Positions 1 to 32,539 of a DNA stretch of 52,785 nt are shown here, in pieces. Under the pieces are notes generated by a model. That model ran no database searches, was not told the DNA's origin, and saw nothing but the letters and a program-made list of their open reading frames with translations. The translations under genes and the position numbers were made by a program. Source of the DNA: Octopus sinensis (taxonomy: Eukaryota). The stretch lies in the NCBI RefSeq assembly GCF_006345805.1, contig NW_021834611.1:1-52785 (forward strand), written 5' to 3'. Within the stretch, counting starts at the first letter, position 1. Every line of letters begins with the position of its first letter.

Positions 1-210
1 ACTTCTCCAGGTTTAATTTCTTCCCAGGTTTGGTTTTCTTTGTTTCTTCGGGGGCATACAGCTGGTTTCAATTGCCCTAGCAGAAGCGTGAATAATTTCA
101 TTTAACTCAGTAAAATCAGGTTTTAATTCTTGTATTATTTCATTTGTTACATAGTTGCCAATTTTGATTTGTTTTTTATTTTGGTTTGTATTTGAGAGTT
201 TATGAAGTGG
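1..210 (-). mobile_element. 5' end of truncated R4/Dong-like LINE (mirror of 39,155-39,364)
   Basis: Reverse complement of the start of the RLE-type LINE at 39,155; abuts (TAT)n. Confidence 0.8.
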
Positions 211-247
211 TTATTATTATTATTATCATTATTATTATTATCATTAA

Positions 248-331
<84 letters not shown>

Positions 332-1049: not shown

Positions 1050-1080
<31 letters not shown>

Positions 1081-1085
1081 AATTA

Positions 1086-1121
<36 letters not shown>

Positions 1122-1232
1122 TATTATTATTATCATCATTATTATTATTATCATTAATATTATTATTATTATTATTATTATATTATTATTTTATTATTAT
1201 TATCAATATTATCATTATTATTATTATTATTA

Positions 1233-1272
<40 letters not shown>

Positions 1273-1390
1273 GATTATTATTATTATATTATTATATTAT
1301 CATTATTATTATATTATTATTATTATTTTATTATTATTATTATTATTATATTATTATTATGATTATTATTATGATTATTATTATATTATG

Positions 1391-1428
<38 letters not shown>

Positions 1429-1455
1429 CATTATATTATTATTATCATTATTATA

Positions 1456-1493
<38 letters not shown>

Positions 1494-1573
1494 TTATTAT
1501 TATTATCATTATTATTATATTATTTTATTATTATTATGATTATTATTATTATGATTATTATTATTATTATCAT

Positions 1574-1605
<32 letters not shown>

Positions 1606-1615
1606 ATTATTATTA
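211..1615. repeat. (TAT)n/(ATA)n microsatellite blocks (211-347 and 930-1615) flanking a LINE fragment; mirrored at 37,765-38,449 and 39,031-39,154
   Basis: Direct reading; source of the poly-I/L/Y ORFs. Confidence 0.97.
348..929 (-). mobile_element. 5'-truncated R4/Dong-like non-LTR retrotransposon 3' end (restriction-like endonuclease region + 3' UTR)
   Basis: Mirror of 38,450-39,030, which encodes RPDIVVRDHEEKKCFLIDVSIP...EKLSKYKDL (PD-(D/E)xK RLE motif); embedded in TAA repeats. Confidence 0.85.
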
Positions 1616-2204
1616 CGTTTATATATATGTGGTGCAAGATTTTTATGTGATATCATGTGTTGAAACAGATATTGTTGCATTTCGAAATGGTCATTTTGCC
1701 CGATCGAATAATAAAAACACACGCACTATATATTTGGTGTTACTTTGCTTCAGTGTTATTTATTTTTTACCTTAAACTTAGTCTTATTTCGGCCAGAGTT
1801 CTTTCGTCACACTCCTGTGACCGCATCAGTGGTCCGTTGCTTTCTTCTTTCTTATTGTGTGTCTCTCCTTACTAACGGTCAGCCATTTTGTATTTCCATT
1901 GTCTGTGTCTTCATTTGCGCATGCGTATATCCCTATGTGCGTCTATGTTTAGTTAGTGTGTGTGGGGGGGCGATGCCTGTAATATTTGTATCTTCTGTTT
2001 ATATATTGGCGTGTAAAAATGCAACATATAAGCATTATCGTGTTTCAATTCAAAATTTTGACGTCTCCCAAGGTGAACGTTGGCCTAACTTGGGACATAA
2101 ATTTGATATAGATTCTAATGACGTTTTCTATTCACTATTTCACACAGCTGTTGCATAACAAGAGTTTGTAAATATTGAATCAATTCGTATAAATCATTCT
2201 GTTG

Positions 2205-2258
<54 letters not shown>

Positions 2259-2364
2259 CGGGAAGCTTTATGAAAATAGACAAAAGACGAAGGCAGGTGG
2301 AAAACAAACAAACAATTGTATTAGTATGGCGCTCAGGAATATAAATAAAACAAGTCTTTATATA

Positions 2365-2425
<61 letters not shown>

Positions 2426-2514
2426 ATATTATATATATATATATACACGTATATATGTATATATACATATATATAATATTTGTATGTATGTATGGATGGA
2501 TGTATATGTATATG

Positions 2515-2549
<35 letters not shown>

Positions 2550-3037
2550 GTATACATATATATATACATGTACATCCATCTATCCAGCCATACATACATA
2601 CATACATACAGACATACAGACTTATCTTCAGCTCTTGGTGGGCCAAATCGGAAGTGTAATCTCTGTGTGTGTCTTTTCAAAACATTGTCTGGGTAAAAAG
2701 CCACATCAGATGCTATGATTGTTCTAAGGTGCATAAAGAGTAGACACACACACACACACACATACACAAGCGTATATGTATACGTGTATATATATATATA
2801 TATATATAATATATATATATATATTATATATATACACACATGTGTATCTTTAAATGAATGCGCGAGCATGTGTGTAAATATAAAAAGAAAGACGTGAGGA
2901 GTGCAAATTCAGAAAAACCAGAGGAAACGACAGCTCGAGTAAGGACTGTTTAAATCTGTCCACTGAATAACTACCACTACACAACCATCATCAACCAGTT
3001 TCAACTTTGCACCTGAGAAAGTCTACTGAGCTCTTTG

Positions 3038-3045
3038 TATAAATA
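3038..3045 (+). promoter_or_regulatory. Candidate TATA box (TATAAATA) for peptide gene copy 1; possible non-coding exon ending at donor GTATGT 3,125
   Basis: Motif is conserved in arm A' (36,287-36,294, minus) and in an older diverged copy (45,113-45,120, minus). No transcript evidence. Confidence 0.35.
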
Positions 3046-3599
3046 CCGTTGGAATCTAACAAGTATGTAAACATTTAAATTATTCATTGTGGCTGTTTGT
3101 GATTAAGTAATAGCAATAGACAGAGTATGTTATGGTAATGATGATGGTGGTAGTGGTAGAGCTTAAGCCGTTTGTAATTGCCGTATGTTTACCAATGCAT
3201 AACATTCTTCTGGTATAAGTTGTATACCTGGAGTACCTGTTCATCGATTTCTTTGCCTAGTTCTTCCTTGCCGAGATTAGTAGCTGAATAGATAAAAGAA
3301 ATTAGAGAGGCCGTTAATTAAAACTCATACGTAATATTATGCTCTTTCAGATAGTGCTGTATTTCAGAAAAGGTCGATTGCCTAAGTTTGTGTGCGCGGA
3401 TCAAATGACACATGTGTTTAACAGCAAACAATTATGTTTACTCAGGTATGGTGTTAGATACTGCCGGTGCAACACGTTAATCAAATATGCAGTGAAATGT
3501 GCAGCAAAGACTGATTTTGGTTATAGAAAATAGAGAAAAAATACTTTTGACAGTGTACAATTCACAAAGAACATTCTGTCAAATGCAAAGTGACAAGCC

Positions 3600-4164
3600 T
3601 GTAACGTTTTATGTGAATATCTTCTCTGCACTGTTTGGGGTGCAAGAAGCAATCACTTTCCGTTGCTTTAATAATCCAGAATTCTACCAGTCAAAGAAAC
3701 ACAAAACGCAGACGTAAAAAATAGATATACTTTATTGTTTTATACCGGTGAGAAATCAGTGGTATATCTGATATCCTTGGTTCTGGGCGCGCAAGGCTGA
3801 AAGTTAATCTCTTGTAAGGTTACAATGTTCAGCCGCTAAAAACAGAACGGGTTAAAGATGGCGGCGGAAAATGAAGACGACGTTGTCTGCAACAATTTGG
3901 TAAAAAACCTTCGGCCGACTGCTATCAAAGCTGGAACGAGAGAAATATACGTCTGCTGGTATCAAAGGCCTTCTGCTGTCTCTGCTGTCTCTGATGGACG
4001 CTGATGGTCAAGGTTTTTGCGTTCCCTTGCCTCTTTTCTAAGGGTCGCTTTTCCTAGCCAATCAGCTAATTCCACGATAGCAATATTCCCTCTTCTGTTG
4101 ATGTAAACACGCGCGAATCAGAAAAGGGCGTTGCGCGCGCGCGCTGTTGTATAGCGTCACTACA
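3600..4164 (-). repeat. 3' LTR of Gypsy element
   Basis: TGTAACG...TCACTACA on the + strand; only 2 mismatches found vs 8,708-9,272. Confidence 0.97.
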
Positions 4165-4176
4165 AAGGCTCCCCCA
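4165..4176 (-). other. Polypurine tract (GGGGGAG) preceding 3' LTR
   Basis: Minus strand reads tgggggagcctt directly before TGTAGTGA. Confidence 0.75.
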
Positions 4177-4348
4177 CAAGTGCGTATGCACGAAGCAAAC
4201 GTCTTGTAGTGACTGCAAAACTCAAGGTGGATACCAGAAAACCAAAATAGCACACAATATAATACATTAAAACAACAAGAGAAAAAATACTCAAAATGAG
4301 CAAAGTTCAATGAGTATTGAACTGTCACTGGGAAGTCAATTGAAAATG

Positions 4349-5671
4349 TCAAATATAAATAGTTTTGGAAAGTTTTTTCGGCCAGTGAACAGTTCTGCCT
4401 GACCTCGTAACATAAGGTCTGTTCGAGGCAGGCTGCGACGACGAAGGTGGTGTTGTCGATGTTGGTGTTGATAATGGTGCATGTGTAAATAGTGGTGTTG
4501 TCAAAGGTGCATGTGAAGGTTCAACGATGGCTGTGGCAGTGGGGTCATTAAAAGATGTGGACACCTCAAAATATGCCCTTTTAAGACGATCTACGGAGAC
4601 GGTCTCCGAACGACCGTTAATTTCAAGTTTGAATACCTTCGGCGTGCGAGAAATCACACGAAAATGTCCTTTATAAGGAGAAACAAGAGGTCCTTTGACA
4701 GAATCATCACGAATAAAAACATGCGTCCAAGAATTAAGGTCTGATGGCACACTAGAAGGAGGATTTTGGTGTCGAGGGTCCATAGGAGGAAGGGCAGAAA
4801 AATATCTGCGTAATCGAGCAACATAAGACTCTAAATTAAGAGACTGTGACTTGTCTGGCACCAACATCGTACCAGGCAATGCCAGTGTGGTACCATACAA
4901 GAGCTCGGCAGACGAAAAACCAAGGTCTGCTTTAATCGCAGTCCGACATCCAAGCAGGACGATCGGTAGAAATTCAGTCCATGACTGTGGATTCGGCGAG
5001 GCACGCAAAGCGGCCTTAAGTTGCCTATGGAAACGCTCCACCATCCCATTAGAAGCGGGGTGGTAACTTGTGGTGCGTATATGATGCATCCCCAGGATTT
5101 GTGATAACTCACGAAACAATGCAGACTCGAATTGTCGACCACGATCTGTGGTCAAACTGTACGGTACACCATACCTCGAAATCCAATTAGATACGAAAGC
5201 CCTCGCAACAGTTTCAGCTGACATGTCTGCTATAGGAATAGCTTCCGGCCAGCGTGAAAAGCGATCAATACAAGTTAAAATGTATGAGAACCCGCGACTC
5301 ACAGGCCATGGTCCAACCAAATCAAGGTGGATATGGCGAAAACGGGCTTCAGGAGAGGAAAATTGTCCAAGTGGAGCACGAACGTGTCTGTGGACTTTAG
5401 CACTCTGGCACCTCAAACAAGAGCGTGCCCAAGAGGTAATTGATCGTCGCATATTGGGCCAGAAGAACCGAGCAGTAACAAGCTTTACTGTGGCAGAGAT
5501 ACCTGGATGTGACAGTGAATGAAGAGCATCAAACACAGAACGTTGATGTTTCTCAGGTACTAATGGTCTAGGTGAACCGGTAGGAACGTCACAAAGAATA
5601 GAGCCTTCCGCTGTAGGGAGCGGAAGGTAGACAAACTTACAGTTAATAAACTTAGGCGAAGTTAAATCCAA
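4349..5671 (-). pseudogene. pol: Gypsy pol, integrase portion
   Basis: HHCC zinc finger (H-x3-H...C-x2-C), DDE (DLVGP, DRGRQF, VERFH), GPY/F-like PYKGHF; out of frame with the RNase H segment. Confidence 0.93.
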
Positions 5672-5706
5672 CTCCTCTAAAGGTGGTTGGTCCTGCGAAA
5701 TAGCAG

Positions 5707-7229
5707 TTAAATCAATTGCTGCAGGAGAGGAAATGGAATTGACAGGGAGTCTAGAGAGAGCATCTGCCGGATGTTCTCCGTCCCTGGCACATGCCTAATG
5801 TCACTTGTAAATTGAGAAATATAGTCCAGGTGACGGAAAGCACGAGGAGAGAGTTTATCCGTTTTAGAAGATAGTGCAAAAGTAAGGGGCTTGTGATCAG
5901 TATAAATCACAAACTCTCGTCCCTCGAGCTGGTGTTGAAAATGCCGAACTGACAGATAGATCGCTAGTAACTCTCGATCAAAAGTACTATATCTGCGTTC
6001 AGCTGGCTTTAGCTGACAAGAAAAGAAAGCTAAAGGTTTAACTTCACCCTCTACGGTGTGCTGCAAAACAGCGCCAATTGCAGACTCTGATGCGTCCACA
6101 GATAAAGTAAGTGGAGCATTAGGAGCCGGATGTGCCAAAATAGGGACTGAAGCTAGTTCCTTTTTAACCAACTCAAAGGCAGACAGTGCTTCAGCCGAAA
6201 GAGTAAGACGGGCGTCCTTTTTAGAATTGCCCTTTAGCATCTGTGTTAAAGGTAACAACTTGTCCGCACACCGATCTATGAAACGTCTATAGAAATTTAC
6301 TATGCCTAAAAAATGGCGAAGTTGACGCAAAGAAGAAGGTGGTGCGATGCGCTGAATAGCATCGACTTTGGATGAGAGTGGTTTGATCCCTCTCGAGTCA
6401 ATATAATGACCGAGAAAATTAAGAGATGGTTGCCCAAAAACACACTTGTCTGGATTAATGCGAACACCATAGTCGCGAAGACGCTGAAAAAGCTGAGACA
6501 AGTGCAGGAGATGATTTTCATGCGTATCACTTGCGATTAGAATATCATCGACATACGCGAACACAAAATCAAGTCCGCGAACAACTTCATCTATAAACCG
6601 TTGGAAAGTACTAGTGGCATTCCTCAAACCAAAACTCATAAATAAAAATTCGAAACAGCCAAAAGGAGTAGTAATTGCTGTTTTAGGAATATCGTCTGAG
6701 TTGACCGGTATTTGATGGTAGGCACGTATGAGGTCAACCTTAGAAAAATAGTACAGCCATGTAAATTTGCCGAAAAATCGTTTAAAATCCTTATGGAATA
6801 TTTGTCCGGAATCGTCACCGAATTTAGACGCCGATAATCTCCCACCGGGCGAAAATCTGTATCCCCTTTTCTTACTAAATGAAGGGGAGATGCCCATGGA
6901 CTGGTGGAGGGGCGTATCAGACCGAGCTGGAGCATATGCTCAAACTCAGCCCTAGCAGTTTTAAGTCGATCAGGTGCAAGACGCCTTGGACGTGAAAAAA
7001 CAGGAGGTCCAGTTGTTGTTATAAAGTGTCGTGTCGAGTGTAATGGCTTAGCCACCCTAAAGGTAACATCATATAGCTCTGGAAAAGAAGCTAAAAGAGA
7101 GTGAAAAACATCTCCAGATGTACCGACAAAAAATGTCGGGCTAAGAGCTAAATTGGTAGATTCTCCGGTCGGCGTGGAGAGTGTAGTCGAACTATCGACC
7201 AACCTCCGACGTCTGACATCTACCAACAA
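5707..7229 (-). pseudogene. pol: Gypsy pol, reverse transcriptase + RNase H (split across frames 6636..7229 and 5707..6897)
   Basis: [46 protein letters not shown]. Confidence 0.94.
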
Positions 7230-7558
7230 ATCAATTTATCCAGAAAATCCGCACCTAAAATAGGATGCGGAATGTCGGCAATGACAAAAACCCATTGAAA
7301 GTCTCGACGAAGATTAATATCAAGGCGTAACGAGATCTGACCGAATGTGGCTATTGGTGACGAGTCAATAGCGTGCAAGATGACGTTAGATCGTTTTGGC
7401 CTGTCGGTTGTGCAACGCAGTGGCCAAATACTGCAACAAGAACCAGTCTCCACCATGAAGTTTTTCTTCGACACTAGATCCTTAACAAAGAATGCACGAT
7501 AACTAGACAATGTTGTGGAGGAAGTTGACGTGCTCAAATTCTCCGAATCTAGTTTAAA
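7220..7558 (-). pseudogene. pol: Gypsy aspartic protease, -1 frame relative to gag; catalytic motif reads ETG instead of DTG
   Basis: FMVETGSCCSIWP...ILGADFL. Confidence 0.88.
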
Positions 7559-8256
7559 GACTTATAAGTGCATGGCTGTATGCACCTATGTGCATTCTCT
7601 CCATACTTGGAGTGGTACCAACACAGTCCAGACTTAGACTGTGTTGATCTCGAGGATGAACGACTGCGACTCCGCGATTTTGAAGATCGCTTACCATCGC
7701 GACACATCGCGTCCATCCTTTTAGTGAGGGTTTCTATTAGTTTAGAAAGCCCCTCAATTGAGGCCGAAGAAGTTTGTGAACAGGCACAAGCAGACCGTGA
7801 CGATGGTTGAACGGCAAATTCAACCATCTTATCAGCCATCGTTGCTATTTGGTCCACTGTATTTGTCTCTAAGCCGGTTGCCAAAACGGTCTGTATATAG
7901 GCGGACAACCTCGAAAAAAAATCTTCCGAATTACCACTTAACTCCCTCAGTCTTCGTAAGAATTCTGACGGAGTCCTATCTCCCAGTTGCTCATCTGCCA
8001 TTAATTCGTTGAAACGACTTTCCTCGCTTCGTGTATTTCTTTTCTCTACCTCTAATTTAACAGACGCATAAGTAGCGCCTGGACTAGGGTCTGTGATAAG
8101 GTCTCTTGCTGTAGATGCCAGTTGAGGCGGCATGCAACCATAAAGGATTTGCAACTGCTGCTCGGGAGTGATACTTTGTGCACGAAATTGTGCCTCTAAC
8201 TGTGAAAACCACAGTGTGGCATCACCTGTAAAAGTAGGTAACGAACCCATAGACAT
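7549..8256 (-). CDS. gag: Gypsy Gag (235 aa) with C-terminal CHCC zinc knuckle
   Basis: LWFSQLEAQF, LGDRTPSEFLRRL, CWYHSKYGENAHRCIQPC. Confidence 0.92.
   Translation of the reverse strand: MSMGSLPTFTGDATLWFSQLEAQFRAQSITPEQQLQILYGCMPPQLASTARDLITDPSPGATYASVKLEVEKRNTRSEESRFNELMADEQLGDRTPSEFLRRLRELSGNSEDFFSRLSAYIQTVLATGLETNTVDQIATMADKMVEFAVQPSSRSACACSQTSSASIEGLSKLIETLTKRMDAMCRDGKRSSKSRSRSRSSSRSTQSKSGLCWYHSKYGENAHRCIQPCTYKSLN
7552..7558 (-). promoter_or_regulatory. -1 ribosomal frameshift heptamer T TTA AAC at the gag/pol junction
   Basis: Gag frame reads TCT TTA AAC TAG; the -1 frame reads TTT AAA CTA GAT and continues open into the protease. Confidence 0.8.
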
Positions 8257-8693
8257 TTTGTAGCCTTTTATTCACTAGATGACTCTCTCAAATGGAAAAA
8301 ACAAAACTGACAACGAACTAACGCTGAACAGACGCAACAAGGAAAAAACAAAGGGAAAAAGAAAGGAAGAAAGAAAGAAAGAAAGAAAGACCAACAATTG
8401 AACCAATAAATTTTGAATGTGCAATTTACAAAAAAAAAAAAAATGTTTTTTTTCTTTTGTTTTCTTTTGATTGTACTGTGTGCACAGAGAATAGAAAAAT
8501 TCTTTCTTTTTTGTTTTACCAACCTTCGTCGCGTTTTAATCGAGAAAAAAAAATTTCTTCTCTTTTTTTCTTCCGTGCGTGAGTGCAGATGAAGAAACAA
8601 ACTGTTGAAAGTGACTGGAAAACAGGTTGGTCGTGTTTCAGACTTGGCAGAAAAACTGGATTTTTTTCTTTTTGTTGAGTGTTCTCTGGAACT

Positions 8694-8706
8694 TCGGGGA
8701 TCACCA
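8694..8706 (-). other. Primer binding site, tRNA-Trp-like (TGGTGATCCCCGA)
   Basis: 1 nt from the 5' LTR. Equals the complement of the eukaryotic tRNA-Trp 3' end (TGGTGACCCCGA) with one extra T. Confidence 0.8.
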
Positions 8707-8707
8707 C

Positions 8708-9272
8708 TGTAACGTTTTGTGTGAATATCTTCTCTGCACTGTTTGGGGTGCAAGAAGCAATCACTTTCCGTTGCTTTAATAATCCAGAATTCTACCAGTC
8801 AAAGAAACACAAAACGCAGACGTAAAAAATAGATATACTTTATTGTTTTATACCGGTGAGAAATCAGTGGTATATCTGATATCCTTGGTTCTGGGCGCGC
8901 AAGGCTGAAAGTTAATCTCTTGTAAGGTTACAATGTTCAGCCGCTAAAAACAGAACGGGTTAAAGATGGCGGCGGAAAATGAAGACGACGTTGTCTGCAA
9001 CAATTTGGTAAAAAACCTTCGGCCGACTGCTATCAAAGCTGGAACGAGAGAAATATACGTCTGCTGGTATCAAAGGCCTTCTGCTGTCTCTGCTGTCTCT
9101 GCTGGACGCTGATGGTCAAGGTTTTTGCGTTCCCTTGCCTCTTTTCTAAGGGTCGCTTTTCCTAGCCAATCAGCTAATTCCACGATAGCAATATTCCCTC
9201 TTCTGTTGATGTAAACACGCGCGAATCAGAAAAGGGCGTTGCGCGCGCGCGCTGTTGTATAGCGTCACTACA
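8708..9272 (-). repeat. 5' LTR of Gypsy element
   Basis: Direct repeat of 3,600-4,164. Confidence 0.97.
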
Positions 9273-9610
9273 AGCCTTACATATTTGTTTGCGACAGAAA
9301 TAATAATAATATAGAAGTCAGAAAACCTTGAAGTAAGAACATTCATTCAGTGTTAACAGTATGGAGAATGTTTACGGACAAACGCTTCGAAGGCGTCATC
9401 TTCATCAAAATATATACTTAGATTCGTATTTTTGGTGCAATTAAATTAGCTATATTACTAATTGTTTAAATGGTAAATTTTGGATTTTCAGAACAGCTAA
9501 AAGATAATTGTTACCTAAACTTCAGCTGTAGACTTCTGCTTCTTTGTAAGAAAAAAATGCTTTTCTATTAATGACTCTCACTGCTATATTTGTCTATCAT
9601 CAGGTGCGTG

Positions 9611-9674
9611 ATGAAAGGCATCAGTGTCCTATTGTTTTGTGTATTCATTTCATACACCTTCTCGGTTAAACAAA
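9611..9674 (+). CDS. Cys-rich secreted peptide, copy 1, coding exon 1 (signal peptide MKGISVLLFCVFISYTFSVKQ)
   Basis: Upstream acceptor ctatcatcag|; ATG 9,611; hydrophobic h-region; phase-1 donor GTAAGT at 9,675; 64/64 nt identical to 35,334-35,397. Confidence 0.85.
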
Positions 9675-10321
9675 GTAAGTATAATTGTAAAATTCTTTTA
9701 TTTTATAATAATTTGAAATGTAGTGGGGAAAAAAGGGGGAAAACAGAAAGGTGGAAAAGAGGAAAATGAATAACGCTACCTCAGCGGTCTTTCGGTTATA
9801 CTCCATTTATATGTTTTAACAGCTTTTAAATAAATAACTCACTTTTTATATACACTACTCTTAGACCGAGTATACGGATTTACGCTACTTCTATATAATA
9901 TATGACATTTAATTAACAAAATAAACTGACGAATCTTTTATATACAAATCGAGAAGAATTCTAGTGGTGTGCTCTCATCTATTACGCCTTTATTTGATCA
10001 GAACGTAAGCACGAACGAAATTCCTCTGAGCATATTTTGTCGAGCTAACGATTCTTTTCACACACGCCGACGCCTGTAGAATTCTTCATTATTAAAATAA
10101 TTAAGGGAAGAGAATCAGCAAATGATGTATATAATGTTTCATGTGTTGTTTTGTTTGTTTTCTTGCCATTCCTTTTTATTGCTCTTTATTGGTTTTTATC
10201 TCCTTTTGTGTATTAAAAACATCCATCACTACAGAGATGAGCCATATTTAAGTGTATGAGTGAGGAAATTCGAGTTCCGGTCGTCATGATCCTCCATCTT
10301 GTTTCAGATGGTGTTACCATA

Positions 10322-11160
10322 AATACATTCTCCTCTATTCAATGAATTATACATTATCCTCCATTTGATACAACCTCCTCTATTCAATGAATTATACATT
10401 ATCCTCCATTTGATACATTCTTCTCTATTCAATGAATTATACATTATCCTCGATTTGATACATTCTCCTCTATTCAATGAATTATACATAATCCTCCATT
10501 TGATACATTCTCCTCTATTCAATGAATTATACATTATCCTCCATTTGATACATTCTCCTCTATTCAATGAATCATACATTATCCTCCATTTGATACATTC
10601 TCCTCTATTCAATGAATTATACATTATCCTCCATTTGATACATTCTCCTCTATTCAATGAATTATACATTATCCTTCATTTGATACATTCTCCTCTATTC
10701 AATGAATTATACATTATCCTCCATTTGATACATTCTCCTCTATTCAATGAATTATACATTATCCTCCATTTGATACATTCTCCTCTATTCAATGAATTAT
10801 ACATTATCCTCCATTTGATACATTCTCCTCTATTCAATGAATTATACATTATCCTCCATTTGATACATTCTCCTCTATTCAATGAATTATACATTATCCT
10901 CTATTTGATACATTCTCCTCTATTCAATGAATCATACATTATCCTCCATTTGATACATTCTCCTCTATTAAATGAATTATACATTATCCTCCATTTGATA
11001 CATTCTCCTCTATTCAATGAATTATACATTATCCTCCATTTGATACATTCTCCTCTATTCAATGAATTATACATTATCCTCCATTTGATACATTCTCCTC
11101 TATTCAATGAATTATACATTATCCTCCATTTGATACATTCTCCTCTATTCAATGAATTAC
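10322..11160. repeat. 45-bp minisatellite, ~18.6 copies, in intron 1 of peptide gene copy 1
   Basis: Unit tgatacattctcctctattcaatgaattatacattatcctccatt; 15-aa periodicity in the ORF track. Confidence 0.97.
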
Positions 11161-11256
11161 CTGTTGAGTACTTCATGGGTATTTTGTGTATTTCCACACG
11201 AAATATCGGTAAATGGATATTTACTTCTTCCATATATATTTTAATATCTCTTTTAG

Positions 11257-11305
11257 ATGTCGCTCCCTTCCATCAAGAGACAGGTTTGAGTAGAGAGAAG
11301 GAAAG
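11257..11305 (+). CDS. Cys-rich secreted peptide, copy 1, coding exon 2 (pro-region (N)VAPFHQETGLSREKE)
   Basis: tctcttttAG| acceptor, |GTAAGA donor, 49 nt, phase 1 to phase 2, compatible with exons 1 and 3. Confidence 0.82.
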
Positions 11306-11349
11306 GTAAGAACAACAAATGTACGTCTCATACAAATGTAATTAATTTA

Positions 11350-11720
11350 GTATTGGCAAGATAAGAAAGTTCATTTTCGGCACTTGATGCTTTGGGAATC
11401 AGACAAAAATTGCTGCAGCTCGGCTGCATATTCACCAGATATTGCTCCTTCGGATTTTCACTTATTTAGGTCCCTGCAGAATAGTCTTAATGGTAAAAAT
11501 TTCAATTCCTTGGGTGACGTAAAAGGATACCTTGATGAATTCTTTGCCATGAAACCACTTCAATTCTGGGAAGAGGGTATTTTCAAGTTAAATGAAAGAT
11601 GGAGATCATTGTGAAACAAAATGGTTCATATTTGGTTGATTAAAAATGTAATGGGCAAGTATTTATTGACCTTTTTCTTTCCTTTAAAAATCGGCACGAA
11701 CATTCCGGACAACCCAACAG
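11350..11720 (+). mobile_element. Mariner (Tc1/mariner) transposase C-terminal remnant
   Basis: AYSPDIAPSDFHLFRSLQNSLNGKNF...KLNERW (mariner YSPDLAPSD motif); mirrored at ~33,918-34,290. Confidence 0.88.
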
Positions 11721-12425
11721 ATGCTGAAGCGTTGCAACAGTTGTCCAGTGTTACCATCCTCCTCTTTGGTTTCCAAAGAGATATTCATGCGAGCAAGACC
11801 GGAGATCTCTATGACAGTTTTTTCATTTTCTTGCTTGCTTCAAGTTATGTTATCCGACCGGTTATTTTTACATTGACAGATATTCTGATGTTAATATTCC
11901 ACCAGCATTCGTTTCGTTGATGTCTATGTATGTATGTAACAACAGGGTTTCACTATATACATTCCAGGACAATCTTACTACCGGAATGGCATTGTTTCTC
12001 TTGTGTTGGCGACAACGTCGTGTCGCATAGGGCGGTAGTACCTTGATATTTTTTGGTAGCTGTTGATCCTATGTGTGATGTCTTCAAAAGTAACAGGATA
12101 TAATGGGGAAATAGAATGTCCACAATCAAGCGATACTGTTGCAAGTTTCCAACGGTTTTTCTTTCGTTCACTTCAAACAGTTGAAGTTTGATTCTGAAAA
12201 TCTGTTCCGGCCATCCCCACACTCGCTTCTTTTCACCTTCCTGTACATCAGTCATCATGTCGTTGGACTCGAAATGGTAGTGAAGGAATGTGGCAGCATT
12301 CAGTTTGTGCATAATGTTTGGGCAAGAAATGAGCCAATAGCTTTCTGTAAACTCTGTGCTTTCATTCTGGGCTGCCGGCTTTGTTGTGTGTCAATGTGAC
12401 CTTCCACACACACACACACATACAT

Positions 12426-13090
12426 AGGTGCAGATGTGGCTGTGTGGTAACAATCTTGGTTCCAAAACACATGGTCCTCAGTTCAGTCCCACTGTGTGGT
12501 AACTTGGCATGTGTCTTCTGCTATAGCCTCAGACCAACCAAAGCCTTGTCAGTGGATTTTGTAGACAGAAACTGAAAGAAATGAATTGTATATATATATG
12601 TATATATAAATGTAAGTCTATGAGTGTGTCTTTGCGTTTCTCCCTCATCACTGCTTCACAACTAGTGTTCGTTTATTTAAATCCCCATAACTTACTGGTG
12701 TCAGAGGAAACTGATAGAATAAGTACCAGGAATATCAAAATAAAAAACCGACTATGCAGTGTCTCATATTTTTGTTTGCCCAGTTGTATCTATCAATTTA
12801 TCTTTGTGTATGTGTGTGTATGTATATATATGGATTTCGTAGACAGGAACTGAAACAAATCAATCTTATATATATGTATGTATATATGTAAGTGTATGTG
12901 TGTATCTTTGTCTCTGTGTTTCACCCTCATCACTGCTTCACAACTGCTGTTCATTTATTTACATCCCTATAACTTATTGGTTTCACAAGAACAAACTAAT
13001 AGAATAAGTACCAGGCTTATCAACATAAAAAAGCACTAGGCTGTGTCTCATATTTTTGTTTGCCCACTCAGTTGTATCTATCAATTTATC
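12426..13090 (+). mobile_element. Degenerate tRNA-derived SINE with tandemly repeated 3' portions
   Basis: Head gtggctgtgtggtaa...gttcagtcccactg matches the head of the copy at 44,565-45,020; 3' module repeated (~12,630-12,760 and ~12,910-13,040); mirrored at ~32,545-33,213. Confidence 0.75.
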
Positions 13091-13092
13091 TT

Positions 13093-13124
<32 letters not shown>

Positions 13125-14485
13125 ACACCCTAATGGCGGCCTTAACTCCCAAATTTTAGTCATGTCTATTATGATCCAAAACTAGGTCAAAAGTACTGAA
13201 TGGATCTTTATGAAATTTGGATATTATATTCTATGCATAAGGGCCATAACCTCCATGACAATTCATATATTTTTCCTGTTGATAATATTTTAAACGTAGA
13301 TATTAGACACAAATGAAGTAATTTTTAAAAAATTTCATCTTCTTACAAGTTAGAAAGACCCCTCCATGGGGACTTAACACCCACAATTTTGTCATTTTAT
13401 CTAAGCAAAAACGAATACAGTTGTGCTCTTAGAAGCTGTAGGGTTACCAGAGCATAAAAGATGAGCATTATTTGTAATTCAATGGTGCAAAAGTGTAACA
13501 GTTTGCTTTCACATACACTTACATCGTGATTTCTGCAATGTGCTGCATAAATTGTCAAGTAAATGACAGGCATCTTTGCCTCCACTGCTTCAGTTGCAAA
13601 GTGTTGAGTAAAGTTATTTGATTGCAGACCTTCTTTCAGTCTTTTTATTATCACTGGGTCACACATAGTCCCCAGATGGTAACACTGATTTCAAGGCCTT
13701 CCCAGATGAGTGACTTGTTATTCAAAGACGTTTATAGATTGCAAATTTATTCTGCCCAGTTACGTATCAGTGTAGTGGTCATTTGCCATCTCCACAGGTG
13801 ACATTTTCATTTCTCCTTAGCCCTCACGTCACACAGTTGTTAATGTTTATTTCAGTTGGGTCACGCCCTTCCAATTGCTATAGATCCATAATGCATCTAA
13901 CGGCTGTGCCTGTCACCTGGATGGTGAGAAAGCCTACTTTGGAAGTGGTAACGACTAGGGTAGGGTAGCTGACCGCTTATTGTGATCATTCGTCTTTTCG
14001 TTTCCTGTAGCTTTACTGTCTTTTACAAACCCAGTGAACATATATTTCCTATTTCAAAGAAATTCAAACAATAGTTATAAGACCCAAGTTAAAAAGATTC
14101 TCAACAATGCAACTTCTCTTCCTGACATTAAGACACCCACGCCCAACAGGGGCCTTAACTCTCACATTTTAGAGCTCCATGATCTTCATTTTTCAGGAGC
14201 AAAATCCTTTTAACAGGTTCGATAAGACTGGAATTTTGGAATATGCGCATAAAATTCAGTAGTATGGGAGACATGTAGCACGATTACAATTTTTTTAGGG
14301 TGTGTAAAGAGGGAAAGAACGCTCATCTGCAATTTTGAAGAAATTCGAATCATAGGTATTCCAGTTCATTACAGAAAATATAACAGAAAAGTCTAATTCT
14401 CCAATTGCATGTAACACGAGCAACGCCGGGTATCTCTGCTGGTTTAATAATATTTTGTATTCTCTACTATATTTTGTATTTACAG

Positions 14486-14621
14486 TGCAAGGATTAAGAG
14501 AAGTGCATGTTTAAAAAGAGGATGTGCGGGTCAAGGAGCAAATAAAAGGTGTGTATGCTGCCCCGGTTACGAGTGTATACGAACCAGAGATTATTGCTCG
14601 TGTGTTAAATATAAGGCCTAA
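14486..14621 (+). CDS. Cys-rich secreted peptide, copy 1, coding exon 3 ((S)ARIKR-SACLKRGCAGQGANKRCVCCPGYECIRTRDYCSCVKYKA*); full precursor 82 aa
   Basis: tattttgtatttacAG| acceptor; phase 2; KR dibasic site, then a 39-aa 8-Cys domain; same framework as 30,931-31,144; AATAAA at 14,798-14,803. Confidence 0.87.
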
Positions 14622-14976
14622 ATTAATACGACGAATGTATTAATACGAAGAACTGAAAATGGTAAAAGAAGAGAAAATCTGCAAACCATAACTTACAACT
14701 GTGACTTTTCTTACAACCCAACTTAATACGACGAATGTATTTAATATCTAATATATTTATGCTATTAATCCGTCAAATTTTAATGAAATTCCAATGAAAT
14801 AAAAATATTAAAGCATCGCAAGTCCTTGGTGTTTCGTTATTCGCTGTGCTATTTGTTTGTAATCTATTGAAACGGTAAGAAAATCTCAGTGCTTCGTTCT
14901 TCGCTGTGATATTGGCCTTTAAATTATGTATATGGATGTTAAGATTTTACATTGCAATGTCACACAATATTATTGT

Positions 14977-15026
<50 letters not shown>

Positions 15027-15282
15027 AGCGATGGGCCATATACCCCAGAAATAATCATGTGCTCAGTCGCATCCCGCGGTGATTGGTGAGATGACGTAGC
15101 TGCAGAGGATGGCCAACGACCTTTGTTGCAGCTGCCACGCAACATCCCGTGTTGCACTTGGTTTGATGAGGATTTTTCTGTAATTCCTTGAAAGTTGGAC
15201 GACCACGAAGTCTCGTACATTTTCTTGCAATATTGTAGAAAAAATGTCAAATATTGAAACCCACACATACATACACTCACAC

Positions 15283-15337
<55 letters not shown>

Positions 15338-17813: not shown

Positions 17814-20800
17814 GGTTGGTTGGCATCCTTTTTGTCTCGGGAGACAATGGAGTTGCGCATAAAATAGTCCAGTCCGGCTTTTACATTTCGTGTCCTGATA
17901 CATTTCCTGCCGTGGCTGTGTAGTCCTATCCTGGACAAACACTCCCTCTGGCAGGTGCCGCAAATGTAGCGAAGACTGTTCCTGGCTTGTTGTAGTGTCA
18001 TAGTTTCTTGTTGACGTCTTTTCTTGTCTTTCCATTTCTCCTCTCTCTCTCTCTCTCTGTCACTCCTTTGTATTCCCTCTTTTACGGTACGTCGCCAATC
18101 TCCAAGGTTGCTGGCAATTGCTTCCCAACTGTTAATATTGATGTTGCAGGCCTTCATGTCCCTTTTGCAAACATCCTTGTAACGTAAGAACGGTCTACCC
18201 CAGAACTAGTGCCCCTTGCAAGCTCTCCGTAGAGTATGTCCTTGGGGATTCTGCCATGTCCTTGGGGATTCTACAGCTAACATGCCCAAGCCATCTCATA
18301 CGTCTTTGTGTGAGGAGTGCAAACATGCTTGGTATTCCTGCTTGCCTGAGGACATCTTTGTTGGGGATAGGATTCTGCCATTTGATGCGGAGGTTTTTCC
18401 GGAGGCAGCGCAGGTGAAAGATGTTTAGGCGACGCTCTTGGCGTGTGTATAGCGTCCAAGTCTCACTTCCATACAGTAGAGTGCTAAGTACACATGCCTG
18501 GTAGATCTTCATTTTCGTGGTCTTGGTCAGCTTATTGTTGTCCCATGCCCGTTTGTATAGTTGGGCCATCGCAGCAGCTGCCTTGCCAATGCGTATATTG
18601 AGCTCAGCGTCAAGAGATAGGTTGTAGGTGACGGTAGAGCCAAGATAGGTAAACTTCTCCACCTCCTGTAATCTGTGGTCTCCAATATGTATGTTTGGGA
18701 TGTCCGATGTAGCCTGACCCATGATGTTGGTCCTCTTAAGGCTGATAGCTAAGCCAAAGTCGTTACATGCTTGCTCAAAACAGTTAATGAGCCTTTGAAG
18801 GGTTTCTTCTGTGTGTGATACCAGAGCGGCATCATCAGCAAATAGCATCTTCTTGATCAGGACGTTTCTGATTTTTGTCTTGGCACGCAGGCGCGAGAGA
18901 TTGAACTATTTCCCGTCACTTCTACAGTGCAGAAACACTCCATCATCTGATGTCTGAAAGGCATGGGAGAGCAAGAGCGAGAAGAAAATGCCAAATAATG
19001 TAGGAGCGAGGACACAACCTTGCTTTACCCCGTTTTTTATTTGGAAGGCGGCTGGTGTTGAACCATTGTGCTGTATGGTGCCTTGCATATCATCATGGAA
19101 AGACTTGATGATCCTCAGCAGCTTTGGAGATTTTTTGGAGTAGGATGAAGAGGCCTTTTCTACTTACCGAGTCAAAGGCCTTTGTTAGATCAATGAAGGT
19201 CATATATAGTAGTATTTTCTGCTCTCTGGACTTCTCCTGAAGTTGGCGTATGGAGAATATCATATCAATAGTTCATCTGCTTCTTCTAAAGCCACACTGC
19301 GATTCTGGATAGATTCGAGAAGCAAGTAGTTGTAGCCTGGCCAGGATAACGCGAGCAAAGGTCTTTCCAACAGTGCTTAGAAGAGATATTCCACGGTAAT
19401 TGTTACAATCACCACGGTCACATTTGTTTTGTAGAGCGTAATGATGTTAGCATCCCGCATATCCTGAGGGACTGTACCCTCTTCCCAGCACAGACACAGA
19501 AGCTCATGAACGTGCCGAAGCAGGATGGTGTTTTTGCAGGCTTTGATGATCTCTGAGGGAATGCCGTCTTTTCCCGGAGCCTTGTTACTTGCTAGGGAGT
19601 CAATAGCCTTGGTGAGCTCTGCTATAGATGACGGACTGTCAAGTTCGCACATGACTGGCAAGATCTTGACACTCTCGATTGCAGCCTCAGCTACTGTAGT
19701 CTCCCGTGAGTAGAGATCCTGGTAGTGCTCCACCCATCTATCCATTTGATTGCTTTGATCCCTGATGAGATCTCCAGTAGTTGCTTTCAGAGGGGCCGAC
19801 TTGGTTGCGGATGGACCGAGGGCATTCTTCAAACCGGCATACATCCCACGGGTGTCGCCCCTGTCAGCTGCTGACTGGATACTCTGACAGATTTCCTGCC
19901 AATACCTATTTGCACAGCGTCTGGCTGTCAGTTGGGTTTTATTTCTTGCCTTTCTGAGTTCTTCGAGTGACTTTGTAGAAGAATCACTCTTGTATTGCAT
20001 CAGAGCTACACGCTTTGCTTCGATAACTGGCTCCAGCTCTCAGAGCCCAGCATTGAACCAATCTGGGTTTTGCCTTTCTCTTATGCCGAAAGTATCTATT
20101 GATGTGGTATACAAGCTTCCCCGATATAATTCCACCTACCTTCAGCAGAGGAGGTTGGGCAGCTACTGAGGGCAACCTTGATAGAAGCAGCAAAACATTT
20201 TCGCAGTGTAGGGTCCGAGGTTCTGGCAGTATTAATGCGTGGTCGGCCCACTTTTTTGGAGCGATGGACTTTTTTAGGCAGAATCCTCACCCTACTTCTA
20301 ATAAGTGAGTGGTCTGTGTCACAATCCGCGCTGTGGTAACTGCGGGTCTGTAGAACAGAATTCAGAAAGGATTTCCGTGTAATGATGAGATCCAGCTGAT
20401 GCCAGTGGTGGGATCTTGGATGTTTCCAAGATGCCTTGGGGGATGGCTTGTTGGTAAAGAATGTGTTTGTGAGGCACAGGTTATGGTATGTGCAGAATTA
20501 GAGTAGTCTCTGACCATTGTCATTCATAATGCCAATACCAAAGTGTCCAACACAAATGGGCCACGAATCATGGTCAGATCCCACGCGAGCGTTAAATTCC
20601 CCTAGAAGGTAGATATTTTCAGTTGTTGGTATAGTTTTTATGACACAGTTGAGATCTTTGTAGAACTGGTCCTTGGTCTCCTCTGAGCTGTAGAGAGTGG
20701 GAGCATAGATGCTGAGTAGATGTACTGAGCCAGAAGAAGTCGAGAGGCGCAGTGAGAGAATACGCTCAGTGCCTCCTGATGGTGGTTCTATTGAGGAGAG

Positions 20801-21574
20801 TAATGAGTTTCTCACTGCAAAGCCAACGCCATAATGACGAGGTTCTTCTGGATCGCTTCCCTGCCAAAAGAAGGTGAAATCCTGTTCTTTGAGTTTGCCG
20901 TTTGAGGGAAGTCTTGTCTCCTGTAGCCCATCAATGTCTATGTTAAGCCTCTTTAGTTCACGGTCAATGATGGCTGTTTTCCTTGTGTCTTCAACCCTGG
21001 GTAGATCATCAGATATTCCAGAGCACATGGTTCTGACATTCCAGCTAGCCAACCGCAGGACTGGTGGTTTCTTGTGTTTTTTAGTTGTTTGCCTGGTGCA
21101 GAGGTTGCAGGCCGCTTTTCAAGCCATACTCTTAGCTCCAAGCACCCAATGAAGCAGGCCAATCTGAATGGACTTATCACACGTGACTGTTACCTCCCGT
21201 GTTGTTTCTGCAGCTTTCTACAGCAGCACTGAAGTGTCCTTTCCAGTTTTGCGCAGGCCTGGGCTAGATATAAGAAAGTCCTGGGTAACCCAATCGTCAG
21301 GTTTCCTCTCTCGACCTTGCTGATGTATTCCAAAGGAGTGCAGAGCATTACGTTTGGCACCAGCTTGGTTGCAGGAGCTGCCGGAAGAGTGTCGAGTTGA
21401 ACACTAAACCGCCTTCGGGGCTCCACTCTGGATTTCTTCGAAGGTTGTCTCCTTTCCGTAACCCTGGATAGGGGCCCATACTGGGTACTGTCAGCCGGAG
21501 CCAGCAGAGCCCGGGACTCTTGTCAGGCAGGGTCGTCACTCCCTGAAGTAGTGAAGAAGTTCGCTACCCACTAC

Positions 21575-21575
<1 letters not shown>
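17814..21575 (-). mobile_element. Near full-length degenerate RTE-clade LINE (APE endonuclease + RT)
   Basis: SWNVRTM, LQETRL, SIYAPT, LGEFNARVG, SDH (APE); NYRGISL, GVKQGCVLAPTLF, LFADD (RT); LLYGSETWT; (CCAA)n tail; many stops and frameshifts. Confidence 0.93.
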
Positions 21576-21639
<64 letters not shown>

Positions 21640-21640
<1 letters not shown>

Positions 21641-21800
21641 GGCGCATGAGTGGCAGTGTGGTAAAAAGCTTGATTCCCAGCAACGTGCGTCCGTGTTCAG
21701 TGCCACTGCGTGGTACCTTGGGGAGGTTTCTTCTACTATATCCTCGGACCGACCAAAGCCTTGTCAGTGGATTTGGTATACAGGAACTGAATGATTCCTG
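21640..21800 (+). mobile_element. tRNA-derived SINE head fragment
   Basis: aggcgcatgagtggcagtgtggtaa...gttcagtgccactgcgtgg...accaaagccttgtcagtggatttgg; same family as 44,565-45,020. Confidence 0.75.
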
Positions 21801-22202
21801 TAGTATGTATGTATATAGATATATATTAGCAGATATTAGCCCCTTGATAATATTCTCACATTGGCTCCTAAGTCTAACAATTTTACGTCTATTTTTTTCT
21901 TTGTATAATACTGCTCACTTGCTTAGTAAGTATTGCTTTCGTTATTTTATCACAGTCATAATCTCTTTTTTTAAGCAAACATCACGCGAGTCCAACAGCA
22001 AAGGGAGAAGTAGTTTGTAAAATTTTACCTTTCCCTCAAAGCAACATGGAGATTTCAGTCTAGCAGCCCTTCTGTAAGCATTGTCGTACGCGCGCGTGTG
22101 TGTCTGTGAGAGAGAGAGAGGGTCAGACAGACAGAGAACATTGCCAACAATGAATGAAATAAACATGATCTTCTTCCAATAAAAGCGGTTCTGTGGCATT
22201 TT

Positions 22203-22980
22203 TTACATACTATGCAATGTTGTTTTCTTCTGCCCTAATGCTGTGTTTGCATCCAATAAGTCCTCTTCCCCCCTCTTTCTTTTTCTTGATACATGCAGTC
22301 TGTCTGTGTCGCTCTTTGGGTGGAGTATCCCATATCTAGTCGTCAACTTCCTTATCTCTCTCTGTCTATGCTGTTTAGTTCGTCTACTCTCCATGCGATT
22401 ACCTCTGCTCCACATCTCAGGAATGAAACCGCCCAGTTGTTGATAGATTCAATCTTATTCCGTCCGTTTAATTTCGACTTAAGGATCAGTCTCAGTCTGC
22501 ACAAGTACTCCACCTTATGTTTTTCTGTCATTTCTTTCTCCATCAATTTATCCATTTCCAATGTCCCCAAGTACGTATAGTCCGTCTTTTCTATCTGTTT
22601 CATAACGTCCCTCAACGGTATCGCTAGCCCGTCCATACATTTGATTTTGCCTCTCTTCAAGACTAACACACCATACTTTCTCAGACCAGCTCCATTCTGA
22701 TATCAGCACTGAAACTATACATCGTATCAACGACGGAACTGACTTGGGATTCATCTTTACCATAAAGTTTGAGGTCATCCATGAATAACAAGTGGTTGAG
22801 ATTTTGTTGGCGGCTTTTGAATACATACCCAGCCTTTGCTTTCCTCAGAATCAGTATTAGTGGTATCATGCACAGTACAAAGATCAGTGGGGACAGGCAG
22901 TCCCCTTGGAAGATGCCTCTCCTGATTTCTATTGTCCTTAAACTTCTTCCATAGGCTGTCAGTGCCGTTGACGTAAGGCC
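22203..22980 (-). mobile_element. R4/Dong-like RT fragment (degenerate); mirror at ~51,000-51,790
   Basis: IFQGDCLSP, HLLFMDDLKLY, HPKSDTDRL. Confidence 0.82.
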
Positions 22981-23845
22981 CCGAACCCTTCAAAGGGATG
23001 TTTAGCATTTAAGTTAGCGAAAAAAAGCATAATTTGTGATTCCAAAAGGATTATATCTTCCTCAAAGTTACGAGGGAAAAACATCGGATCTTGTGAATTT
23101 TCCAAATTTCTCTTTCCACCCTCACAAATTTCTTTATAATCGTAATCTATACCGTTTGAAAGGTATAAAATTTCATTCAAAAACCCCACTTTCTAAAACG
23201 TTATGAGGGAAAAACATCGGATTTTGGGGATTTTCCGGAGGCCTCTGCCCACCAACGTTGCTTTCCGGGCATTTTGGGATTCATATTCGTTTCCTAAGCC
23301 TTTTTTTTTTACATAAGTTGCACGATTTTTGTTTCGATTTAATTTCCGGGTAAAAATGTCAACATTAACCAACCATTTTTTTCTCCCTCCATTTTTTTCA
23401 CTTCCTTCCCAACATATTTTAAAAATATAAACTCAATATGACTGAAGTTTAAATAATGTGCATTTTTAGGATCTTCACCGAATATCATCGCTTGTGTACC
23501 ACATTGAGACTTTTGCGAATATTTGAAAATTTGTTCGTTGAAACGTGTTTTTCCGAATTTTACTTTCTAACTTTAAACTCTACTAAACATTTTGTATATT
23601 TATTGGTACAATTGATGAGCAAAAAATTGTGGAAAACAGTTTGATATTTCGATAAATCTAATACGAAATTTGAAAACGACCACAAGTTTTCAGATGCATG
23701 TGCCTTTTCAAACCGAAATGAAATCTTCCTATATATTTTCCTGCGTGGAATTACATTTCTTTCTGTTATACCTATACATACATAGATACATACATACATA
23801 CACATACGCACACACATATATATATATATATACACACACACATAC

Positions 23846-23883
<38 letters not shown>

Positions 23884-23935
23884 ACATACATACATACATA
23901 CATAAATACATATATGCATATATATATATGTATGC

Positions 23936-24018
<83 letters not shown>

Positions 24019-24599
24019 TACATATATATATATGTATACGCCAACACACACACATATGGTAACTGAAAGACGGAAAAATAGAATATACGAGAATTTATTA
24101 ATCACGACAATTGTTTCCATACATCTACCATCGAACCCTGAGGGTGGGACACTCAAAAACTGGTTCAGAAGCATCCGGTGGTGCAGATGTGTCTCATCGG
24201 GTGATAAATAGTCACAAATCGTTAAAGAACAATTCCGCAATATAACGTCTCGTTTTGTAGAAGGAAAGTAGCCAGGTGGTGGAAATATCTTCATTTACAT
24301 AGAAGTTGAAAAATGAAATCACAGATAAAAAAAAAAGAGAAATGAACAGGCAATACAGCGAGGAAATTATTAGAAATAACCGTTAACATATATGGATGTA
24401 TTAACGTCCTCGGACAAGCTGCATGGTGCGAGTACACTCGATCATACAAGCATCCGCGGAAATGTGAGCATACGTACACGTGAGGTTTGGTGCGCTCATG
24501 ATTACAAAGCGAGTTAACTATCTACTTTGTGTTTGTAAGAATGGAGATGTTAAAAGTAAACTTAAGTCATCTATACCTTAAAATAAATTCTGTTAGCAG

Positions 24600-25420
24600 T
24601 TACTCAAAGTTCATTCCCCCTGCATTCTGCGAAAATACATTCATATGCGTCTAGGCATCTCGAGAGTATTTCAGAAAGTCTGTTAATTGTCTTGTCATTA
24701 GTCCACAAATTAGACAGAGATTTGTAGGAGCAGAGACGGCATCTTCTGGAAATTATATTGTATGGTTTCGCGTACCTTACTATGGACCAGCATATGCTGT
24801 ACTTCATTTTATCCTCCTTCAGTCACCATACAAAATCAGCCAAATATATAGGATGTCTTATTGATTGTCTTAAAGATGGCAACAAGATTACGATAAATGA
24901 AGCAGCCGTCTGCTCAATGTAAACATGCGGCCATCTCCTTGTAAGCACGGTACATTTATATACAAGATTTGTACTCATACAAAGATTCATCAATGGACAT
25001 TTTGATTTTTCTCTGCATGAGCATTTATCGCATTTTTAATTGTATATAAGACAGTCCCGACTCCATTTATCGACGTTGTTACCGTGTTAGCTCTATCAAT
25101 AGTATTTCTACTATTGGCCATAACTGGTGTGTTTTTCATTGCGGTTTAGATCTCCTTTATTAGCATTCAGATGCGTATGCTCGCTAGATCCAGTGGTTGG
25201 GTTATTGAACCTTCGTCGCATTTTGCTATTCATACGATGCATAAGCTACTCAAAATTAGCAGAGTTAGCGTAGGAGACCTTCACGGTAAGCCTATTAAAA
25301 ATAGCATGATACCGATTAGGTTTAGGAAAACCTTTGTCCAAAAGTTTTCCAGCGATCTTGGTTGAAACATGCGAACCGAAAATCGAGTTGAACCAGAGAA
25401 CATCTTGATTCCTATATCTG
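24600..25420 (-). mobile_element. Degenerate Penelope-like element C-terminal (GIY-YIG region); mirror at ~49,075-49,880
   Basis: VLWFNSIFG..., FNRLTVKVSY, WSIVRYAKPYNIISRRCRLC resemble PLE IWFNPPF / TVKLSYS / WSI..A.PY...C.LC motifs. Confidence 0.72.
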
Positions 25421-26012: not shown

Positions 26013-26079
<67 letters not shown>

Positions 26080-26082
26080 TAA

Positions 26083-29632: not shown

Positions 29633-29706
<74 letters not shown>

Positions 29707-32490: not shown

Positions 32491-32539
<49 letters not shown>

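Follow-up and report, generated by a model that had tools for sequence, protein, structure and literature searches.

Introns that are conserved between paralogues beside a hypervariable exon encoding the mature peptide are a hallmark of gene families engaged in arms races or recognition, and the pattern is documented in conotoxins, snake toxins, and CRP-I of Mytilus. In conotoxin genes, the nonsynonymous (Dn) and synonymous (Ds) divergences both rise from exon 1 to exon 3, with cysteines that remain fixed and loops that vary (PMC3862624), and a switching of exon segments (ASSET) beside conserved introns has been proposed for snake three-finger toxins (PMC2474615). Here, we describe this pattern in a 52,785-nucleotide (nt) stretch of Octopus sinensis DNA (RefSeq contig NW_021834611.1, positions 1 to 52,785, hereafter the window), which carries two copies, A and B, of a small three-exon gene predicted to encode a secreted, cysteine-rich prepropeptide. 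The initial annotation of this DNA had likened the pair to conotoxins, snake phospholipases, and gamete-recognition proteins.

The anatomy of both copies could be read directly from the sequence. Copy A lies on the forward strand. Its exon 1 (positions 9611-9674, 64 nt, donor GTAAGT) comprises the ATG and the signal peptide (21 codons plus 1 nt, hence ending in phase 1); it is the sole upstream candidate with an ATG and a GT donor at the end of 64 nt, and it matches exon 1 of annotated O. bimaculoides homologues. Exon 2 (11257-11305, 49 nt, acceptor TTTTAG, donor GTAAG) encodes the propeptide, and exon 3 (14486-14621, preceded by TTTACAG) encodes the end of the propeptide, a Lys-Arg (KR) processing site, and a mature peptide with eight cysteines, with the TAA stop codon at 14619-14621. 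Copy B lies on the reverse strand, with an exon 1 identical to that of A (35334-35397), exon 2 at 34334-34382, and an exon 3 (30931-31144) that encodes the KR site, the eight-cysteine peptide, and a hydrophobic tail. Splice sites are canonical throughout, and the exon phases join into open reading frames (ORFs) of 82 amino acids in A and 108 in B. Both copies have the signal peptide beginning with MKGISVLLFCVFISYT, whose first 18 residues are identical to those of the O. bimaculoides gene LOC128250514.

Comparison of the two copies revealed a sharp contrast between introns and coding segments. Across 3910 aligned intron sites, 97 differed (2.48%, or ~97.5% identity), and these differences were evenly spread: 18 of 647 and 1 of 97 sites in the unique parts of intron 1 (9675-11256 in A), and 78 of 3166 in the 3.2-kb intron 2 (11306-14485 in A). 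The stretch coding for the mature peptide is only ~75% identical. Exon 1 shows no difference over its 64 nt, which is by itself not unusual for this pair (p about 0.4), whereas exon 2 differs at 9 of 49 nt, with six amino-acid changes and no codon changed only synonymously. The first 24 nt of exon 2 (encoding VAPFHQE) are identical and all nine differences fall within 11281-11303, the 3' half being 36% divergent. Exon 3 carries 32 differences in 132 nt over 14486-14617, or 33 in 132 when the 44 whole codons at 14487-14618 are counted, of which 21 are changed nonsynonymously and 3 only synonymously. In contrast, the 43 intronic nt before exon 3 contain a single difference (site 14456) and the 30 nt after exon 2 contain two. 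At both the donor of exon 2 and the acceptor of exon 3, the block of high divergence breaks off within about 15-30 nt. No intronic window reached these values, the maxima being 9 mismatches per 132 nt and 5 per 49 nt, and the excess over introns was highly significant (Fisher's test, p = 9e-21 for exon 3, p = 4e-6 for exon 2, and p = 8e-9 for the last 25 nt of exon 2). Given that the pair is very young (2.5% neutral divergence) and that the compared exon segments contain no indels and no alignment ambiguity, exon, intron, and synonymous rates are directly comparable. We thus recovered the contrast and every count given in the initial annotation, with one correction: the contrast had been assigned to 11257-14617, a span that leaves out exon 1, which lies upstream.

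The differences also spare particular features of the encoded peptide. None of the 33 exon 3 differences touches the codons of the eight cysteines (24 nt, p = 4.5e-4), and the KR processing site, as well as the GY and RDY motifs, are unchanged between A and B. Since cysteine codons and the KR site are untouched, the scaffold stayed under constraint. By codon position, the exon 3 differences are distributed 14:10:9, and transversions are enriched among coding differences, with 12 transitions to 29 transversions as compared to 47:50 in the introns.

Copies A and B belong to an octopus-only, uncharacterized gene family in which this contrast recurs. Protein searches found relatives in O. bimaculoides (LOC128250513, 514, 516, 517, 536, and 541) and in O. 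vulgaris (CAI9738754 and CAI9721905), all of them uncharacterized. An exhaustive profile search of 1.84 billion representative proteins returned only octopus sequences plus one spurious protein with CBM1 repeats, Pfam scans of both precursors gave no match, including to conotoxin or toxin domains, and a literature search found neither the family nor its signal sequence in any paper. Its precursors consist of a conserved signal peptide, a propeptide that starts at VAPFHQ and usually ends in KR, an eight-cysteine domain, and a hydrophobic C-terminal tail that is conserved in all O. bimaculoides members (...IH..N.I.QTVIAFLIF.VNLPSY). The three-exon layout could be reconstructed in five annotated homologues and is the same as in A and B, with VAPFHQ opening exon 2 and the cysteine-rich domain in exon 3, although exon 2 measures 49 nt in A and B versus 55-61 nt in the homologues. 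The locus in the window is collinear with LOC128250513 at 78-86% identity, and in BLASTN comparisons everything aligns except the cysteine-rich part. Within the family, cysteines follow the order C-C-CC-CxC-CxC, whereas A and B have their eight cysteines arranged as CxCC...C...CxC, one cysteine of the first CxC having been lost and a new one gained two residues before CC. This derived arrangement is common to A and B and absent in the other members, which identifies them as sister copies.

Over 21 family pairs, exon 1 was the most conserved part (mean 88%) and the cysteine-rich part the least (53%), with introns at 65-75%. An independent example is found in LOC128250514, where a tandem pair of exon 3 copies differs by ~4-8% in the flanks, the KR site, and the tail, and by ~30% from KR to the last cysteine, with a dN/dS ratio (omega) of 4.0 (likelihood-ratio test, p = 0.03). 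The family genes lie in clusters on one O. bimaculoides chromosome. Some of them, at CM046622.1 (about 29.19-29.21 Mb) and at a second locus, have one exon 1 and one exon 2 followed by tandem copies of exon 3; three such copies are intact in LOC128250514, and a pseudo-copy carrying a stop codon is found in LOC128250513. The arrangement suggests alternative terminal exons or the duplication of exon cassettes. As a side observation, the O. vulgaris models of the family appear mis-fused or truncated; one of them, 273 amino acids long and spanning 121 kb, joins propeptide and cysteine-rich parts from several paralogues. Annotation of the family in O. vulgaris is therefore poor.

We next consider what drove the divergence. 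Between A and B, nonsynonymous divergence per site (dN) amounts to 0, 0.20, and 0.34 in exons 1, 2, and 3, respectively, and synonymous divergence per site (dS) to 0, 0.20, and 0.155. The exon 3 dN is ~13 times the intron divergence, which rules out relaxed constraint as the cause. A pseudogene evolves at the neutral rate, and pseudogene decay was likewise rejected, as it can neither make a gene diverge ten times faster than its introns nor spare all cysteine codons. Moreover, a contrast that follows the boundaries of the coding segments while sparing the cysteines and KR indicates that selection acts on the protein. Pooling the A-B pair with the LOC128250514 pair gave an omega of 2.1 (p = 0.07); older family pairs are saturated, with a median omega of 0.9. 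The changes could not be polarized with the O. bimaculoides relative as an outgroup, its dN of about 0.98 to both copies being too high.

Several results nevertheless weigh against a reading in terms of positive selection. For the A-B pair, the NG86 ratio is 1.9-2.2 (Fisher's test, p = 0.12-0.31), and pairwise GY94 likelihood gives an omega of 1.3-1.6 (p = 0.5-0.64 versus omega = 1). Furthermore, the exon 3 dS of 0.155 is ~6 times the intron divergence (Poisson p = 0.004-0.025), and across the family the median dS is 0.92 in the cysteine-rich part against 0.30 in the tail of the same exon (~3 times). Selection on amino acids cannot raise divergence at synonymous sites and hence cannot explain this excess; part of it stems either from changes that enter this segment at a higher rate or from a more ancient origin of the segment. 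Clustered multi-nucleotide mutations were considered as its source and rejected, as adjacent double substitutions were not in excess (8 observed versus 9.1 expected). Finally, the tail is damaged in both copies, by deletion in A and by a frameshift in B, which makes their present-day function uncertain. Of the strong positive selection advanced in the initial annotation, selection at the protein level is thus retained on account of the coding-bounded divergence and the spared cysteines and KR, whereas the dN/dS ratio (1.3-2.2), not significantly above 1, does not establish that this selection was strongly positive.

With confidence slightly better than even, we favour diversifying selection on the mature-peptide loops, joined by a second, rate-raising factor, after a single recent duplication. 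A and B would then be young duplicates of a gene whose ancestral product had a signal peptide, a propeptide ending in KR, a knottin-like mature peptide with eight cysteines, and a hydrophobic tail. They would have arisen in one event, about 2.5% neutral divergence ago, and since then the C-terminal half of the propeptide and the inter-cysteine loops would have gained, in both copies, ~10 times the substitutions of their surroundings, with the cysteines, the KR site, and the signal peptide retained throughout. We infer that the exposed mature-peptide loops were probably driven apart by diversifying (positive) selection, as happens in peptide families with toxin, defence, or recognition roles. 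The second factor, invoked because synonymous sites are elevated too, would raise substitution at all sites of the hypervariable segment.

Among the alternatives, the one that fares best is that the hypervariable segments of A or B were overwritten from an unseen family member, whether through short tracts of gene conversion, switching of the ASSET type, or a template of spliced cDNA, which would make the exon segments older than the introns. An exon 3 dS ~6 times the intron divergence is what an older coalescence would produce, and the family does duplicate exon 3 cassettes alone, as seen in the O. bimaculoides genes with two to three tandem copies and one pseudo-copy. A precedent also exists in snake three-finger toxins (PMC2474615). 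However, such an exchange requires two tracts that both end within about 15-30 nt of exon edges and leave the 3.2 kb of intron between them untouched. No donor for the A or B exons was found in the window by a profile search with exons 1-3 or among 12 known family members, none of which exceeds about 37-45% amino-acid identity to either mature peptide. The cysteine arrangement is, in addition, unique to A and B, and the same boundaries (KR site and last cysteine) recur in the independent O. bimaculoides pair. We regard segment exchange as unlikely, albeit deserving of serious weight.

The elevated synonymous rate would also be accounted for by hypermutation targeted to this region, with purifying selection keeping the cysteines and no positive selection at all. 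An omega near 1, with dN and dS both ~6-13-fold over the introns, fits such a process, as does the dS of the cysteine-rich part, which exceeds that of the tail throughout the family. Conotoxin genes show the same gradient of Dn and Ds from exon 1 to exon 3, for which error-prone polymerases have been proposed (PMC3862624). The boundaries of the divergent segments in A and B, however, track protein features (KR, last cysteine, exon edges) and no visible DNA feature, adjacent double substitutions show no excess, and the independent O. bimaculoides pair has an omega of 4.0 (p = 0.03). To our knowledge, no targeted hypermutation mechanism of this kind has been demonstrated in any animal germ line, and we judge hypermutation alone to be improbable. 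Slightly less of a long shot, though still doubtful, is the more general proposition that a germ-line process raises all substitutions, synonymous ones among them, ~4-6-fold in the mature-peptide segment relative to adjacent intron and tail sequence, in parallel in the octopus family and in cone-snail toxins. If true, molluscs would possess a mechanism that targets hypervariability to such segments, and selection would not be the only cause.

A different account places the duplication much earlier and has gene conversion between the two arms of the duplication homogenize the introns, with selection removing conversion tracts over the peptide segments, such that only these show their true age. 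The inverted-repeat geometry of the locus favours intrachromosomal conversion, the raised dS of the protected segment fits, and family-wide the signal exon, the tail, and the flanks look younger than the cysteine-rich part. However, non-coding mismatches between the arms follow a Poisson distribution at scales of 50-400 nt (index of dispersion 1.0-1.4, not significant), with a variance at 100 nt of 3.0 against the 7.8 expected for exponentially distributed tract ages. Such Poisson-like divergence implies arms of a single age. The longest identical run (199 nt, P = 0.40) comes without an excess of long runs, divergence shows no gradient on approaching the exons, and differences between the arms such as an LTR insertion, a change in minisatellite copy number, and a ~950-nt indel were not erased. 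Homogenization of introns by conversion, which the initial annotation had offered as an alternative to selection, is accordingly disfavoured and, in our estimate, a little less probable than hypermutation alone. Least probable is an assembly artefact in which two haplotypes of one locus, with allelic exon differences, were joined as an inverted duplication: although collinearity of the arms exceeds 10 kb and the left one reaches the window edge, there are no N gaps in the 52.8 kb, the arms are inverted around ~14 kb of different sequence and differ by 2.5% substitutions, an LTR insertion with its target-site duplication (TSD), 14 minisatellite copies, and the ~950-nt indel, and even allelic copies would keep the exon-intron contrast and need the same kind of explanation.

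The fate of the C-terminal tail differs between the copies. Exon 3 of A is without the hydrophobic tail of the family. At the deletion junction (14618-14645, forward strand), ~28 nt of filler replace ~950-970 nt kept in B and result in the early stop codon; the filler was copied from ~100 nt downstream (about 14719-14748), and the junction looks like a product of templated end-joining repair. The segment present in B and missing from A (30045-31012, reverse strand) includes sequence coding for the tail, the first part of the 3' flank, and ~650 nt of CT-rich, low-complexity DNA. An origin of these extra ~970 nt as a transposon insertion in B was rejected, as the homologues show that the tail of B is ancestral and that the deletion occurred in A. 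Copy B itself keeps most of the tail, and a 1-nt insertion (about 30945-30960, reverse strand) shifts the frame of the last seven residues, which read ...SRKFTI versus ...IVNLPSY in the family. Despite this frameshift, the DNA of the B tail and its 3' flank are still ~80% identical to the O. bimaculoides homologues. By position and hydropathy, the tail may represent a glycosylphosphatidylinositol (GPI)-attachment or membrane-anchor signal, and the family may consist of membrane-tethered knottin-like peptides with a GPI-signal-like tail. If so, the loss of the tail in A would turn a tethered peptide into a freely secreted one.

The two genes sit in AT-rich, transposon-filled eukaryotic DNA, one in each arm of an inverted duplication of ~10-15 kb. 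By self-BLAST, window positions 1-15304 align in inverted orientation with 39364-29346, giving a left arm (1-15304) that may extend past the window edge and a right arm (29346-39364), with A and B convergently oriented ~16 kb apart. The ~14 kb between the arms are transposon-rich and unlike them. The left arm alone harbours a long terminal repeat (LTR) retrotransposon on the reverse strand (3600-9273, 5.7 kb) with 567-bp LTRs that are 99.6% identical, a TSD of AGCC, and ORFs for gag, reverse transcriptase (RT)/RNase H, and integrase. The counterpart of its insertion point in the right arm (~35732/35733) is empty, showing that this apparently young element inserted after the duplication. One transposon integrase encoded in the window shares 94% identity with a protein of O. 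sinensis and 69% with one of O. bimaculoides, which points, albeit weakly, to the O. sinensis/vulgaris lineage. The window also contains a second inverted pair, 19187-27486 versus 52785-47175, which is 93-99% identical and contains non-LTR retrotransposon fragments with endonuclease and RT ORFs. The two inverted pairs are interleaved (X Y X' Y') and not nested, and a single inverted duplication is therefore insufficient to produce the layout.

The introns carry repeats of their own. Intron 1 holds a 45-bp minisatellite with 18.6 copies in A (10323-11159) and 4.6 in B (34480-34686); in LOC128250513, one unit-length match to it lies at the equivalent place. Intron 2 holds old transposon fragments common to both copies, among them an ORF fragment at 11400-11640 (forward strand; ~34240-34000 in B) that resembles the C-terminal end of mariner-type transposases, although Pfam did not confirm it. 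Its presence in both copies indicates that it predates the duplication. A 280-bp unit within the same intron (12553-13119) is tandemly duplicated at 83% identity, also in both copies.

How the mature peptide compares to known folds was addressed by remote structure and profile searches with the exon 3 translations as queries. The cysteine spacing of the octopus family, C-C-CC-CxC-CxC, resembles the eight-cysteine pattern of inhibitor cystine knot peptides (knottins); in A and B, one cysteine sits at a different place than in the other members. The only PDB profile matches and the best Foldseek matches were knottins, namely purotoxin-1, psalmotoxin-1, hexatoxin, coffeetide, and CBM1, all below significance (E = 0.7-8), with a best Foldseek E of 0.68, TM values of 0.43-0.50, and PDB profile E values of at least 1.2. 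The two AlphaFold (AF2) models used were of low confidence, with predicted local distance difference test (pLDDT) values of 65-67. We accordingly call the eight-cysteine domain knottin-like, a term that denotes resemblance and makes no claim of membership in the knottin fold.

The closest described genes are those of the three-exon conotoxin superfamilies (I, M, O, P, S, and T), which share with A and B a signal exon 1, a propeptide exon 2, and a cysteine-rich mature peptide in exon 3, together with long, repeat-rich introns that are conserved between paralogues and a molluscan host. In contrast, no resemblance to conotoxin signal sequences or to toxin families in Pfam was found for A and B, and their host is a cephalopod. 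We also know of no conotoxin precursor with a hydrophobic C-terminal tail after the cysteine domain. MgCRP-I of Mytilus is set apart by having six cysteines rather than eight, no detectable homology, and no hydrophobic C-terminal tail. Snake three-finger toxin and phospholipase A2 (PLA2) genes have paralogue introns far more conserved than their coding exon segments, as do A and B, but they differ in fold, taxon, and gene structure, and the snake proteins are demonstrated venom components. In PLA2 genes, synonymous rates in exons reportedly exceed intron rates, as Nakashima et al. are said to have found in 1993. The A-B pair is a clean case of this puzzle of synonymous acceleration, long noted for conotoxins and snake PLA2 genes. 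While the phenomenon is already known elsewhere, A and B provide an unusually clean, young example of it and point to an unstudied family of cephalopod peptides, octopus-restricted and knottin-like, which are candidates for venom, defence, or chemosensory functions.

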